Positions 1 to 19,240 of a DNA stretch of 64,000 nt are shown piece after piece. This stretch comes from Trichosphaerium sp. ATCC 40318 (taxonomy: Eukaryota; Protista; Tubulinea), in contig JALMLS010000256.1 in assembly GCA_038496445.1 (NCBI GenBank), positions 1 to 64,000 of the forward strand, written 5' to 3'. The notes under the pieces were generated by a model, which saw nothing but the letters and a program-made list of their open reading frames with translations, was not told the origin of the DNA and did not search any database. A program made the translations under genes and the position numbers. Every line of letters begins with the position of its first letter. The stretch's first letter is position 1.

Positions 1-3000
1 TAATGTTGACACGATGTTATAGCTGTAAGAGAATCAGAAGTCGTTTCAGCAGCTAAATCTACTAGTACGTTTTTTTGGAAAAGCCAAATATAATGTCTTG
101 TATTAATCAGGTTAAAATAGAACTAAGGAACAAAATTCAGGAGTTGACTGTATGACATGGTGTTTTTTTTATCCCTAAGTTGTCTTAACTTATTGTATTC
201 ACTTTATTTCTTAGTATATCATCCCTTGTTTACTACCTATTGATCCAGATGAATCCAAGTTAGAGGTAAGTAAAGACTAAGCATCCTTAGAAAATATGCT
301 AATGGGCATGAAAATTAGTTGGTATTCTCTAAAAAGCTACCTGATAGATTTTGCTCAATTGTTCGAAGGTACTGTTAAACAATTATTTGCTTTTTTGGTA
401 ATGACTGTTTAGGTATAAATTTATGTTCATGCCTATCGGATTTTCTGCTTCAGTCGTTGTAAGGGCGTACCACTTGCCACATTTCAATATTGTACGTATT
501 AGATAAGTTAGTCTCATTTTTTTTTGGATTTCTTCTTGTGAATTGAAATGATGTGAACTGAAACTGGTTATAGCAACTTTGTTGGCAAAATGGTGTTATA
601 ATGAAGCGTGGAAATAGAAATCCAATCTTGTTAGGATTATTCTACAATCCACATCTACGCACTTTAGATGTTAATGTCAGATATATAAAATTACACAAAG
701 GATCCGTTTCTAAGGCGAGACACCTTCTCAAATCAGTCGTACGTGTAATCTGCTGGCATTCAACACGACAAAGCAATTATGTAAACATGCTTTTACTTAT
801 GTTCTTAATATAGCTTGAGATGATAAACAATTTGATTGAAGGTGTTTACAGTAACAACTCCGCTGAGAAGTTTGCTCTTTGTACAAAATGTGCAGCAAAA
901 GGTCTTGATGATCATCCTATAGAAACTAGTGCATTAGAAATGCTTATAATGAAGAGGGAGAAGCAAGCATTATGTTCTATTCTAAATGTGGAAATTAAGT
1001 ACGGAAGATTCCAGATGGTTGAAAATCACGTTTTCTGTTCTTTTTCTCGTATACTTATCGTATTGTAGTTTGATTGATTTATGTCCGGATCTATTACTTG
1101 CAGCAAATAATATGATTGAAACATCTACACTTATAATTGGAGAGGAAATTGGAGAAGGTAAAGTTGTTGTTTAGAAGTCTTTGGAGTATAAGTTAATCGT
1201 TTATTTTAAGGCGCTTTCAGTAAAGTATTCAAGGGAACCTATGAGGGTAAAGATGTTGCTATAAAGAGACTTCGTACAGGATCAGGTATGTCATTAAAAG
1301 GGTATACTATCAATACTTCAACAATTCTTCTAGTTTTGTTTTCTCACATTTTTTGTTCAGGTAATCAAGAGGAGCTTGTTCAAAAATGGCAGGAGATTCA
1401 ACAAGAAGCTTTTATAATGGCTGAATTTAATCATCCAAATATTGTTCAGTTTTTTGGTGTTACACTTCAGCCGCCTCAGCTTGTACTCGAGTTGTTAAAT
1501 GTGCGTAACAACGTTTCCTTTTATTTTTTTGAAAACAGAAAAACCCTCAAACACTCGCTAACTTGTACAAAGGCTGGTGATTTGTTTGAATTACTACACG
1601 ACAAGAGTTTCGCGAACAAGGATTTCGCTTGGATTACGAGATTACAACTTGGTATAGATATTGGTAAAGGTCTTGAACACATGCATAAACTTGTACCTCC
1701 TATAATGCATCGCGATTTAAGGAGTCCTAATGTACGTTCTTACAAAAAGCTTATTCGAAAGTTTGGTTCTCGGTTCTGTTTACAATACTAATGATTATAC
1801 GTAGATATTTGTACGTACTCTTGTGATAGAAAAGCAGCTTCATAGCACATAGCTTGTGGCAGATACCATTTATCCTGTTTTTTCTTATAACCTGTCTAAT
1901 CTTTATTTAGCTCCATCGTGAAGGCGATAAGTTAATAGCGAAGGTGGCAGACTTTGGTCTCAGCCAACGTGTGTCTTATAGAGCCAGTGGTATCTTAACA
2001 ACATGGCAATGGATGGCACCAGAAACCTTCGATTCTGCACAGAGTAAAAACTATACTGAACTAGCAGATGTGTACAGTTATGGCATCATCCTTTGGGTGC
2101 GTGATTATGCTTCTCTTATTTCTTCTACGCTTCATATATATATTATTTAGAATTCTTTTGCCCTAACGGTTACTTAGGAGCTTTGTTCACGTGAGTATCC
2201 ATTTGATGAATACCAGATTTATAAAAATGACTCAAGAGGGAATCAAAGCAAGCATATAAATCCCGAAAACTATAATATCTAATAATTTTTTTACTCTAGT
2301 TGCTGTTGGCGATAAATACGCTATGCAAGAACGTATATCCAAAGAGGTATACTTTTTTTTTTCTTTTTTTTTGAATTGGCTTACTGAGTTTATGTGTAGG
2401 ATTTGAGACCTACTATTCCGCCCAATACACCTAAACAAGTGGAGAAAGTCATAAATGGGCTTTGGAAGAGGAAACCAAGTGATAGGTATCTCTTTGCTTC
2501 AACAACTTTTTGAGTTGTTCTTGTTTTTTTCTAGTTTTGATTAGTATGATTTTCCTTATTTGTATTTATGTAGGTGGCCTTTGGGTATTGCTATAAAGAC
2601 TTTAGATAATGAATTGAATAAAGTAAAGCAAAGTATGACAGTACCAGATGATAAGATAACGCGTAAATCGTCTATCTCTACAGTACGGTTTCTTTGTTTA
2701 TTTTTTTGCTACTTTTGGATTTGAAAGTCTTTTAATGTGCTCTCTAGGACAAGCGAAGTCTGAAAGCTTTTGCCATTGAGCGTAAAGAACTAATAATTGA
2801 ATTGGAACGCCAAAAGTGGAGCTGTAATCGTGCTATGGCTTGTAGATTGTACGTCTTATTTTTTTTTTTTCTTCATTCTGATAAATTTTAGCGTTCTTGA
2901 TTATATTTCGTCTCACAAAGATCCACTTCGTGATCCTTATAGTACAATACCTAATGTAAAATCGAGAAAGTTCAGGAGTAATCCTTATCACCGTAAGAAT

Positions 3001-4138
3001 TAAGGAGACTTTGCTCTTTATTGACCCTTTTGTTTTTTATTCCAGATGTATTTGTTCGAAGACAATCAGTTACTGAAGAAGCTAATATCTTGCTCGAAAC
3101 TACTCAACAACATCGTACAACATCACTAGCAAAGAGAGAAATCCTTATTGTGCTACTTGGTTCGTTTCATACTCGATAAGGTGGTTACTAACTGTGAGTT
3201 TCTTAGCTGCTTGGCAACTTGACTTAGCTCAGTTGGATATCTTTTCATTGCCATACAAAATGAGGTTTGTTTTTTGTGATTGAATTTTGTTGACTTTGTG
3301 TTGTTGGCGTTATTCTTACATGGTTTTGTTCTTAGATTCTTCAACTATACTGGACAACGTAGTATTGGTGCTAAGGCATTGTTGACAAGATTCGATGACT
3401 TTACGGAGTTAGGTTGTCTGTACTATATTGACCTTGCTGAGTATCCTTTTTTTTTGTTATTTTTTATTTTATTTTTGGATTGCGGTTTCAAGGTTGCTCT
3501 TGATCCGGCATGTCTTTTCTTTCTTGATTTTCTTCTTAACTAGCATTGACAAATAAAAGACCCTTTTCACTTATCAAGCTGCTTTGAACAGTATCAGTCA
3601 ATTATGCGAAACTTCCGACAAGGTAATTTTTCTTGATAACAAAGATTTTTTTTTGACTTTCTGATGTTTAGGTGTTCTTATTATTCTGTTTGTTAACTTT
3701 GATGCTTTCTCTAAATCTTACAAAACCGGTGATTTGGATAAATTTATTTTAACACTACGTACGTATCCGTGACTGCTTACAAGTCATAAAAGTTTGCCAT
3801 GTTTTTTTTTCATAACTAACATTCTTTTCCAGCAACGAATTACCTCGATGGTGCTGGTGAGCATAATCTAAATCCACTAAATTCCAATGATGCTATAAAT
3901 ACTATACGCACAGTTTTTAGTAACTCATTTAGAAAAAACGGCACGTGTCACGTGAAAAATTGTTTAAAAGTATTTTCAAACTGCAAAAAAGTGCAAGCTT
4001 TTTTTGGATTGAGTTTACTAAGTTGGTTGTTTAGGTCGGTGGAGAACGACTATATTCCATGTCCAAGACCATGTAGATATTAATGATGGAATGCGTTTCT
4101 ATACAAAGACGTACAGAGAAGAGTTTGCTTTTGCTTAA
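1..4138 (+). CDS. Roco/LRRK-type protein, 5' truncated: COR C-terminal part + TKL kinase + G-gamma-like + degenerate G-alpha-like domain (multi-exon)
   Basis: Spliced exons give COR motifs (YIIPCLLP, FMPIGF, WQNGVI), the Roco linker CTKC...LCPDLLL, and kinase motifs IGEGAFSKVFKG, VAIK, HRDLRSPN-IF, DFG, WQWMAPE, DVYSYG. These are followed by ELERQKWSCNRAMACRFVLDYISSHKDPL..NPY and FFNYTGQRS..IILFVNFDAF. Stop TAA 4136-4138. Confidence 0.9.
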
Positions 4139-14485: not shown

Positions 14486-15729
14486 ATGATAAAAAGGAAG
14501 GTAACCACAAAAAAGCAAACGTATGTTTAAAATAGGTCTATTTACGCATGCTAACTCACTGTAGTGTTAAGAAAAGCGTTTTAGGACTCCTGATAGATAT
14601 TTTAGCGCATATTTATCAAAAAACGATAGCAATGATTACGTCTTGGCAAACACGTGGCCTAGACCTCCTGACTGAGGTTTTAGCATATATTTTGCTTAAA
14701 ACGACGAAACCAAGGATTACGCCTTGCCAAACAAGTGACCTTTTAGACCTCCCGACTGAGATTTTAGCATATATTTTGCTCAAAACGACGAAAGCAAGGA
14801 TTGCAGCATGCCAGACATGTCATCGCCTTGCTTCTATCGTTCACGACATTATCGGATATGATAGTGTTTGTATTTCAAGACCCTCTCAAGCTCTAGTGGC
14901 TATACAATATTCAAGTACTCTCCAACACTCAAGAATCAAACTTTTTGGAACCTCCATTTCTGATGTGGTTGCCAGAGCATTTACTGGAGTGACTGAAATT
15001 GAGCTCTTTGACACCAATATAACAAATGAAGGCCTAAAGTCATTTGCTGGCATACACACAATTACTATTAGTAAATGTCACAGTATAACAGATGAAGGTA
15101 TCAAGGTACTTGCTGGAGTACATTCAATTAATATTGCAGGTTGCGATATAACAGATGAAGGCCTCAAGGCACTTTCTGGAGTACATACAATTAATCTTAG
15201 AAAGTGTCACAATATCACAGATGAAGGGTTAAAAGCACTCTCTGGAGTACATTCAATTGATCTTGTATGGTGTTGGCTAATAACAGATGAAGGGTTAAAA
15301 GCACTTACTGGAGTACATACAATTAATCTTGCAGGTTGCGATATAACAGATGAAGGCCTCAAGGCACTTTCTGGAGTACATACAATTAATCTTGCAGGTT
15401 GCGATATAACAGATGAAGGCCTCAAGGCACTTTCTGGAGTACATACAATTAATCTTAGAAGGTGTCGCAGTATCACAGATGAAGGGTTAAAAGCACTCTC
15501 TGGAGTACATTCAATTGATCTTGCATGGTGTCGGCTAATAACAGATGAAGGGTTAAAAGCACTCTCTGGAGTACATTCAATTGATCTTACATGCTGTTGG
15601 CTAATAACAGATGAAGGGTTAAAAGCACTTACTGGAGTACATACAATTAATCTTGTAGGTTGCCGTATAACAGATGAAGGCCTCAAGGCACTTCCTGGAG
15701 TACATTCAATTAATTGTTTTAAAGTCTAG
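14486..15729 (+). CDS. F-box/LRR protein with triplicated F-box motif and about 11 near-identical 21-22 aa LRRs
   Basis: Exon 1 MIKRKVTTKKQT, intron 14521-14564 (gtatgt..ctaac..tag), then one 1.16-kb exon: LLDLPTEILAYI F-box and VHTINLxxCxxITDEGLKALSG repeats. Confidence 0.9.
15030..15715 (+). repeat. Tandem 63/66-bp LRR-coding repeats
   Basis: Recurring acagatgaagg(cctcaaggcactt|gttaaaagcact)..ggagtacat(a/t)caatt units. Confidence 0.95.
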
Positions 15730-15830: not shown

Positions 15831-16160
15831 CTACGAACTTCCGCCCAAAATGTTAAAAGGGATTTGAACCCTTCCCATCCTTTCCACCTGAATGTTAGGG
15901 AGAAAACCAACTCCCAGTTGACCGGGCAAGTCAAATGGTAATTGTAAGGTTGTAGCGATAAATGTAAGTTTTGTTGAATATGTGTTGAATCTGTTTCCAT
16001 GTGTCATCGAGCTCATCTTTAATTACTTTTCTATGAACTGATATTGGCAACAGACCTTTCGAATGTGTAGCATTGTTATAAAGCTTCCATGTCCATTTGA
16101 TCAGGATAGCCATAGCCACCTGGCCATACAAGCTTAAGGAAGGCAATTTGTGAAGTGTCA
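15831..16160 (-). mobile_element. Possible 3' fragment of non-LTR retrotransposon ORF2
   Basis: AMAILIKWTWKLYNNATH resembles the WxxWKxRN motif at the end of L1/Tx1-like ORF2; frameshifted; no poly-A or TSD seen. Confidence 0.35.
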
Positions 16161-16284
16161 GAATTATAAGGGAAAGCTAACTGTAACGACTTGACCGTCA
16201 GACGAACAAACAATTAAACATCTTTATCTATCGTGTCATAGTGTTTGTTTGTGAACTATAATTAACTCTGTGTTCTACATCAAG

Positions 16285-16921
16285 CTGACATAAATGACAA
16301 TACAACCCTTGCATCTTTCACAATGTTTGGTGAGCCGTTATTTACAGCGAGTCAACCCCGTTCGATAATTAACCTTGTATCTCTTGGAAACAACACAACA
16401 ATAGCATCAGCTGATCTCACTACATGGTTAGTGTGCAAACACAACAGGTGTGTATATTTGCGAAAGAACAAAACATGGGCTTCCCAGAGTCAGCACTAGA
16501 AGGCTCTTATCGAACATTCCAGCCCATTCATAACATTTGTAGGTGGGAACCAGATTATTTTCACTGGCTCCTCATTTAGTGTTTTGGCAGCTAACCCTGC
16601 AAACGAAAACAATGTTTGGATTTCAGACTGCCTAATGTTAATTGATTTTATGGTAAATAGAGTAGCACCTACAACAACCACCTGTATCACCCACCGTGTT
16701 TTCAACTCCAACGAGTGTTCCAACTCAAGAGTCAACAAGTGTGCCTACTGAAGCACCAACACGTGCTAATAGTCAGTGCTTGTCACAAAATGATACCAAT
16801 TGTTGTGGTGGGTTTACCTCGGATGTACAGACTGCTGTATGCGTTGATGATGTATGGTCAGTAACGACATCATATTTAATACCTCCTATGCTTATATTAT
16901 CTTCGTCTCTGATCATACAAG
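16285..16921 (+). pseudogene. Internal fragment of the surface-protein family (frameshifted, lacks 3' exons and TM)
   Basis: ADINDNTTLASFTMFG..NVWIS..PT stalk..CCGGFTSDVQTAVCVDDVW..IIQG|gt; frameshifts near 16435 and 16680; the following GNLTW exon is absent. Confidence 0.8.

Positions 16922-17272: not shown

Positions 17273-19240
<1,968 letters not shown>

Follow-up and report, generated by a model that had tools for sequence, protein, structure and literature searches.

An orphan C-terminal extension of a Roco-family kinase gene in Trichosphaerium and its weak resemblance to G proteins

Introduction

The 5' part of a 64,000-nucleotide stretch of DNA from the protist Trichosphaerium sp. ATCC 40318 (contig JALMLS010000256.1, positions 1 to 64,000; the whole stretch is called the window in the following) carries a gene for a Roco-family kinase, which continues after the kinase domain into a tail of 283 residues. 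The question raised by this locus is what this tail is. Roco/LRRK kinases are intensively studied because of LRRK2, and how the C-terminal propeller and the GTPase talk to the kinase is an open question. A preliminary description of the locus had proposed that the tail is composed of a G-gamma-like domain and a nucleotide-dead G-alpha-like domain, which might together clamp a G-beta subunit. The analysis reported here revealed that the tail is a transcribed, spliced, orphan C-terminal extension of the Roco kinase gene. We give an even chance to the reading that it is a lineage-specific, non-enzymatic orphan module of this kinase; descent from G proteins is possible, but was not demonstrated.

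Gene structure and RNA support

The window has a G+C content of about 35% and represents AT-rich eukaryotic DNA with many short introns. The coding chain is on the forward (+) strand and extends from position 215 to position 4138. It comprises 24 exons with 783 codons, is uninterrupted, and has a single terminal stop. RNA evidence came from a small public run (X1), the contigs of which were placed on the window. In the kinase region the joints 1500/1573, 1731/1911, 2247/2300, and 2485/2574 were present in these contigs. After the last kinase exon (2574-2682), the tail continues in the same frame to the TAA at 4136-4138, and it is encoded by the exons 2748-2848, 2892-2992, 3046-3159, 3207-3264, 3336-3440, 3549-3622, 3672-3758, 3833-3940, and 4035-4135 plus the stop codon.

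Eight of the nine tail joints were found in the RNA contigs (2848/2892, 2992/3046, 3159/3207, 3264/3336, 3440/3549, 3622/3672, 3758/3833, and 3940/4035), and the exon chain that had been read from the DNA was thus verified for these joints. The ninth joint, 2682/2748, connects the kinase with the tail. It lies in the region 2488-2811, which is not covered by the RNA contigs, and it is based on the sequence. It would rest on the open frame, i.e., on a 65-nucleotide intron (GTACGG...AG), a preserved reading frame, and a first tail exon that offers neither a start codon nor space for a promoter. The span assigned to the tail in the preliminary description (2748-4138) corresponds exactly to the first tail exon through the stop codon, and all tail peptides quoted there were found in frame within it. 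Two of the exon boundaries that it implied were wrong according to the RNA contigs: exon 3549-3622 begins with QIKDPFHLSS, and exon 3833-3940 extends to ...SNSFRKN.

The RNA contigs differed from the window at five positions (1973, 1980, 2301, 2444, and 3883). Four differences were synonymous and one led to an exchange of Ser to Ala in the tail. The RNA of run X1 is from another strain or allele, and the mostly synonymous differences fit a coding sequence under constraint.

The gene belongs to the Roco kinase family

The exons 215-265, 319-368, 413-491, 574-738, and 814-998 encode the end of the COR-A and the COR-B part of a Roco protein. A blastx search aligned the exons at 413-1044 to the COR-B parts of the Roco proteins P0039, P0142, and P0140, and a COR hidden Markov model (HMM), which was built from Pfam-verified Roco proteins, matched residues 1-183 of the spliced model with an E value of 5e-30. 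The Roc domain and any N-terminal repeats are presumably upstream of the window, because the gene runs off its 5' end and the visible part begins at the end of COR-A.

The COR region is followed by a TKL-type protein kinase, which is encoded by ten exons (1069-1157, 1211-1285, 1361-1500, 1573-1731, 1805-1810, 1911-2096, 2178-2247, 2300-2346, 2400-2485, and 2574-2682). The Pfam family PK_Tyr_Ser-Thr (PF07714) was detected on kinase exon pieces with E values of 6e-12 and 2.5e-11, and a kinase HMM matched residues 200-464 of the spliced model with an E value of 3e-86. The motifs VAIK, HRD, DFG, and APE are all intact. The assignment to the Roco kinases in the preliminary description was therefore borne out by the COR match and by the intact kinase, and it holds for a predicted protein with COR-A/COR-B, then a TKL kinase that appears to be active as judged by its motifs.

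When 1.84 billion representatives were searched with the kinase, the nearest proteins were kinases with 31-50% identity. A Pfam scan of seven of these proteins revealed that six have the order Roc/COR-A/COR-B/kinase, and that three of the six (P0142, P0015, and P0063) have WD40-type propeller matches after the kinase. These WD40-type Roco kinases, which are of the LRRK2 type, are the closest relatives of the kinase domain of the present gene. They share with it the order of COR-B, TKL kinase, and a C-terminal module directly after the kinase. In contrast, they carry a propeller at the place where the present gene has the 283-residue orphan tail, which contains no WD40, Roc, or other recognisable domain; Roc and WD40 profiles had no match to the tail of the spliced model. 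Another match of the kinase query, P0001, is a database protein of 1069 amino acids with 15 partial kinase-domain matches, which may be a mis-predicted or a repeat-built gene model.

Search for relatives of the tail

Several searches were performed for relatives of the tail. At a threshold of E<=10, Pfam gave no family for any single tail exon, and a phmmer search of the PDB sequences with four tail exons returned only de novo TIM-barrel noise. The tail was not present in the 150 nearest kinases of the 1.84 billion representatives, and a tail open reading frame (ORF) had no words in common with any protein of comparable length in a set of 5.8 billion proteins. Two scans of metagenome contigs gave no useful match for the tail. 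The search for the protein itself or its orthologues, which comprised the representatives searched with the kinase, the word-indexed set searched with the tail ORF, and the metagenomes, led to one 27%-identical kinase only. Two candidates were rejected. First, a leucine-rich repeat (LRR) was considered for the TGQRS exon, but the LRR_6 clusters of the ESM Atlas scored 0.66, which is the noise level, and no LRR periodicity was visible by eye. Second, a tblastn search for a paralogue of the tail in the window found none, and the weak matches at 16067-16329 were due to chance.

It had been stated that no protein with this architecture has been described, and indeed no kinase-GGL-G-alpha architecture was found in the open-access literature. 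The nearest precedent for the fusion of a heterotrimeric-G-protein module to a TKL-group kinase is the RGS-domain TKL kinases, which occur in dictyostelids and choanoflagellates (de Mendoza et al. 2014, PMC3971589). In contrast to the proposed architecture, the fused module of these proteins is an RGS domain, which acts on G-alpha, and not a G-gamma- or G-alpha-like sequence, and no RGS domain was seen in the present gene.

The first part of the tail

The first two tail exons (2748-2848 and 2892-2992) encode 68 amino acids that had been proposed to be a GGL-like block, i.e., a helical stretch followed by HKDPL, 17 amino acids, and NPY. The G-gamma subunits and the GGL domains of R7-family RGS proteins (PF00631) bind G-beta or G-beta-5. 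They resemble the tail in having a helical stretch, a DPL, and an NP-aromatic motif further on. However, the canonical spacer between the two motifs is about 9 residues long, in contrast to 17 residues in the tail, which fails the version of the G-gamma pattern with 7-12 residues, and the S/A and Y positions can be aligned only with insertions or deletions. The literal G-gamma pattern that had been claimed for this block did not fit, because K is present instead of R, S precedes its expected place by one residue, and the spacer has a length of 17 residues; the formalised pattern had no match in the tail. Searches of Pfam (E<=10) and of the PDB sequences with the two exon halves were also negative. 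As judged from the sequence, homology of the first tail block to G-gamma/GGL is not established.

The second part of the tail

For the analysis of the second part of the tail, G-alpha sequences were obtained by scanning for a back-translated G-alpha motif of 12 residues and by using two DNA stretches found in this way as queries. PF00503 was present in all sequences of the resulting set, which comprised 120 Gs/olf proteins as well as 120 diverse fragments of protist G-alpha. The tests were performed with the 217-residue G-alpha-like part of the tail, and shuffled sequences as well as real-protein decoys were used as nulls. The decoys were added because the shuffle null is lenient and gave p values of 0.0065-0.02 even for the unrelated COR and kinase profiles. 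In addition, all these tests were measured on a hypothesis that was chosen by looking at the same sequence.

First, the hallmarks of a G-alpha protein were compared with the tail. At the place of the P-loop GxGESGKST the tail reads LLAAWQLDLAQ. The G3 motif DxxGQ is represented by NYTGQ, with D replaced by N, G by T, and GQRS kept. The G4 motif NKxD is degraded to VNF-D, and HVQDHVD is found instead of the G5 motif TCAxD. Between EILIVLL and TGQRS only 24 residues are present, and a missed exon between them is excluded because of the RNA joints. The preliminary description was thus correct in stating that the P-loop, NKxD, and the entire helical domain are missing. The tail would not be a working G protein and, by its predicted sequence, cannot bind or hydrolyse GTP, because it has no P-loop, no NKxD, and no TCAT, and because the 24 residues cannot accommodate alpha1, switch I, beta2, or the helical domain. 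The same elements distinguish it from G-alpha and from pseudoGTPase domains, and the similarity over the whole domain was not significant.

Next, the whole G-alpha-like part was compared with G-alpha sequences. An HMM of Gs proteins only gave no match to the tail. Smith-Waterman alignments of the tail with three G-alpha sequences had z values of 0.4-2.6 and were not significant, and semi-global alignments to a G-alpha without the helical domain had z values of -0.1 to 0.6 against the shuffles, with 6%-25% of the real decoys being as good. An HMM of 82 diverse G-alpha sequences scored the tail with 2.1 bits, a value that was equalled by 89 of 5000 shuffles and 85 of 5000 decoys (empirical p 0.017-0.018). 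It aligned VLIILFVNF-DAFSKSYK... to tsmiLFLNKkDlfeekikk. With hhalign the G-alpha part of the tail had a P value of 0.037 and a probability of 1.4%, and the register was partly different. The best phmmer score of 130 G-alpha comparisons was reached by 8% of the shuffles and 4% of the decoys.

Then each block was confined to its assigned region of the G-alpha profile. Two of the six blocks scored, i.e., G3/switch II and G4, and the other four had no in-register signal. The proposed alphaN/beta1 block without P-loop and alpha1 (3046-3159 and 3207-3264; ...AKREILIVLLAAWQLDLAQLDIFSLPYKM) had p values of 0.09-0.36 against the in-register sub-profile and an hhalign P value of 0.66. The proposed alpha3 block (3549-3622; QIKDPFHLSSCFEQYQSIMRNFRQ) did not match its sub-profile, and its best match to the G-alpha profile was out of register (EKIKK..L..CFPEY). 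The proposed alpha4, beta6/"TCAT", and alpha5 blocks in the last two exons (3833-3940 and 4035-4138, with the stop codon at the end) had p values of 0.44-1.0, and the hhalign P value for the G5 exon was 0.25. Of the series of G-alpha blocks that had been claimed, the GGQRS and IILFLNK-D blocks thus scored above chance, in contrast to alphaN/beta1, alpha3, alpha4, and beta6/TCAT. Taken together, the case for G-alpha homology of the second tail block is weak at the sequence level.

Observations that weigh against an orphan origin

Several weak signals point towards a G-protein descent and weigh against the reading of the tail as an orphan module. The best candidate for a G3/switch II/beta4 block is the exon 3336-3440, (R)FFNYTGQRSIGAKALLTRFDDFTELGCLYYIDLA, with TGQRS instead of GGQRS. 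Its in-register sub-profile match had a p value of 0.0115 against shuffles and of 0.007 against real decoys, and hhalign placed it on the predicted columns of the 364-column G-alpha profile (P 0.054). The second candidate is the beta5/G4/alphaG block of the exon 3672-3758, (G)VLIILFVNFDAFSKSYKTGDLDKFILTL, with IILFVNF-D instead of IILFLNKxD. In this case the in-register p values were 0.0255 (shuffles) and 0.004 (decoys), and hhalign again found the predicted place in the profile (P 0.016), with 40% identity over 15 columns. Furthermore, phmmer aligned the tail residues 57-139 (83 residues) co-linearly with the protist G-alpha P0314, from RLIDVGGQRS to ILFLNKDD, i.e., from beta3 to alphaG, and the phmmer alignments to P0314 and P0294 put the TGQRS exon in the same register as hhalign did. 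Both exons land on the right columns of the G-alpha profile. Their spacing is similar to that of G-alpha as well: the G3-like and G4-like motifs are separated by 56 residues in the tail, and by about 60 residues in G-alpha-i (G-alpha-i1).

When the best scores of the single exons against the whole G-alpha profile were added, the sum was better than for 1999 of 2000 shuffles and decoys (p ~5e-4). The same piecewise sum for control profiles (Roc, kinase, COR, and WD40) gave p values of 0.0065-0.31 on the shuffle null. Half of the signal of the sum stems from exon 3549-3622 on the wrong part of G-alpha; the equally good match of this exon to another part of G-alpha illustrates that such matches come about easily.

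The last observation concerns the DPL...NPY pair, which lies directly upstream of the G-alpha-like part and is rare. A pair of the form DP[LIVMF]-x(5-20)-NP[FWY] was absent from 225,512 residues taken from other proteins, and shuffling the tail 20000 times produced it in 9 cases. A six-frame translation of the window contains the DP[LIVMF]...NP[FWY] pair once, at the tail site itself. The weak G-protein signals, each with a p value of about 0.005-0.05, are consistent in direction and register.

Unusual introns and a microexon

The gene contains several unusual elements of exon-intron structure. The kinase exon 1805-1810 is a microexon of six nucleotides (ATATTT, encoding Ile-Phe), which comes after the catalytic loop HRDLRSPN and is flanked by AG and GTACGT. 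The RNA contig contains exactly ATATTT between 1731 and 1911. The intron 3441-3548 in the tail is a U12-type intron with a perfect 5' site (GTATCCTT) and a branch-like motif (TTCTTAAC) at 3533-3540, the As of which are 10-11 nucleotides from the 3' end. The intron has non-canonical ends (GT..TG), and its junction was set by an RNA contig, in which the loose end ...TATTGACCTTGCTGA is joined straight to 3549. The U12 motifs were used as stated in bioRxiv 10.1101/2020.10.12.336362. The branch motif of this intron is the classic one, in contrast to the TTTGA that was reported for Physarum polycephalum in the same publication. In addition, two GC-AG introns are present (2248-2299 and 3941-4034), and the joints of both were found in RNA contigs.

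Further content of the window and database observations

Further downstream the window contains an intronless ORF of 393 amino acids with an F-box and LRR_6 (14548-15726, + strand; Pfam 9e-49) and a fragment of a subtilase (Peptidase_S8; 17273-17791, - strand). Scanning the window for Rfam families and tRNAs gave no match. Eukaryotic G-alpha DNA was found inside four assemblies that are labelled bacterial, i.e., L003 (BSPN01000361.1), L002 (OZ219972.1), L004, and L005. One case is a 765-nucleotide contig resembling a GNAS cDNA in an assembly of Paracoccus marinus. The other three are intron-split G-alpha genes in metagenome-assembled genomes (MAGs); a Stappiaceae MAG carries one of these genes on a "chromosome 21". 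All are probably due to contamination or mislabelling.

Discussion

In the reading that we prefer, with the even chance given above, the Roco kinase has a lineage-specific C-terminal module without enzymatic function. The tail would begin with a helical segment that ends with prolines, followed by about 215 residues in which five hydrophobic strand-like runs alternate with helix-like stretches. It would stand in place of the WD40 propeller of many related Roco kinases, and it would most likely serve the kinase for docking or autoregulation. As far as the present data show, the likeness to G proteins consists of two short motif blocks and one rare motif pair, not of a domain match. We give somewhat less than an even chance to the possibility that at least one of the two tail parts is truly derived from a G protein.

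The alternative that survives best is the one proposed initially. The tail would be a G-gamma-like segment followed by a Ras-like remnant of a nucleotide-dead G-alpha without helical domain, and both together would grip two faces of a G-beta propeller and link the latter to the Roco kinase, so that a propeller in trans would take the place of the WD40 propeller in cis. The in-register matches at G3/switch II and G4, the G-alpha-like spacing between them, the piecewise sum with its weaker results for the control profiles, and the rare DPL...NPY pair all point in this direction, as does the WD40 propeller at the equivalent position of related Roco kinases. As context, G-alpha has expanded to 26 genes in Physarum (PMC4758236), and the U12-type intron of the present gene is reminiscent of myxomycete-like amoebozoans. 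However, no test was conventionally significant after the freedom in the choice of the family was counted, and four blocks (alphaN/beta1, alpha3, alpha4, and beta6/TCAT) are without support. The 24 residues from beta1 to G3 leave no room for alpha1 and beta2, both of which belong to the core of the fold. Three insertions or deletions are required for the G-gamma spacing, and neither half of the GGL-like block matched Pfam or the PDB. We regard this alternative as unlikely, although far from implausible.

It is also conceivable, but rather improbable, that only the second block is derived from G-alpha. It would then be a pseudo-GTPase remnant on the kinase, would influence the kinase or Roc-COR in cis or take part in dimerisation, and would not involve G-beta; the "GGL" would be a chance likeness in a helical linker. 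This would agree with the facts that all of the statistical signal concerns the G-alpha part and that the G-gamma pattern fits loosely. However, the G-alpha signal is equally weak under this assumption, and the DPL...NPY pair would be a coincidence of 1 in 2000. Last, it is very improbable that the kinase protein does not include the tail, i.e., that transcripts end by retention of the intron 2683-2747, as the gap in RNA coverage and a stop after 13 codons of read-through past the donor at 2683 (2722-2724) would allow, or that the tail is translated separately, because only 65 nucleotides with canonical intron ends separate the exons, the frame is preserved, no start codon precedes the Met of "...RAMACRF" in the first tail exon, and a promoter would find no room.

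What the locus offers at present is thus a Roco kinase with an orphan extension that has been verified, and a weak G-protein lead. If the tail were indeed a module of G-gamma and dead G-alpha, this would be the first case in which G-beta-binding surfaces are fused directly to a kinase of this type. Heterotrimeric G-protein signalling would then be wired directly to an LRRK-like kinase, and the gene would represent a natural experiment on the recruitment of a propeller.

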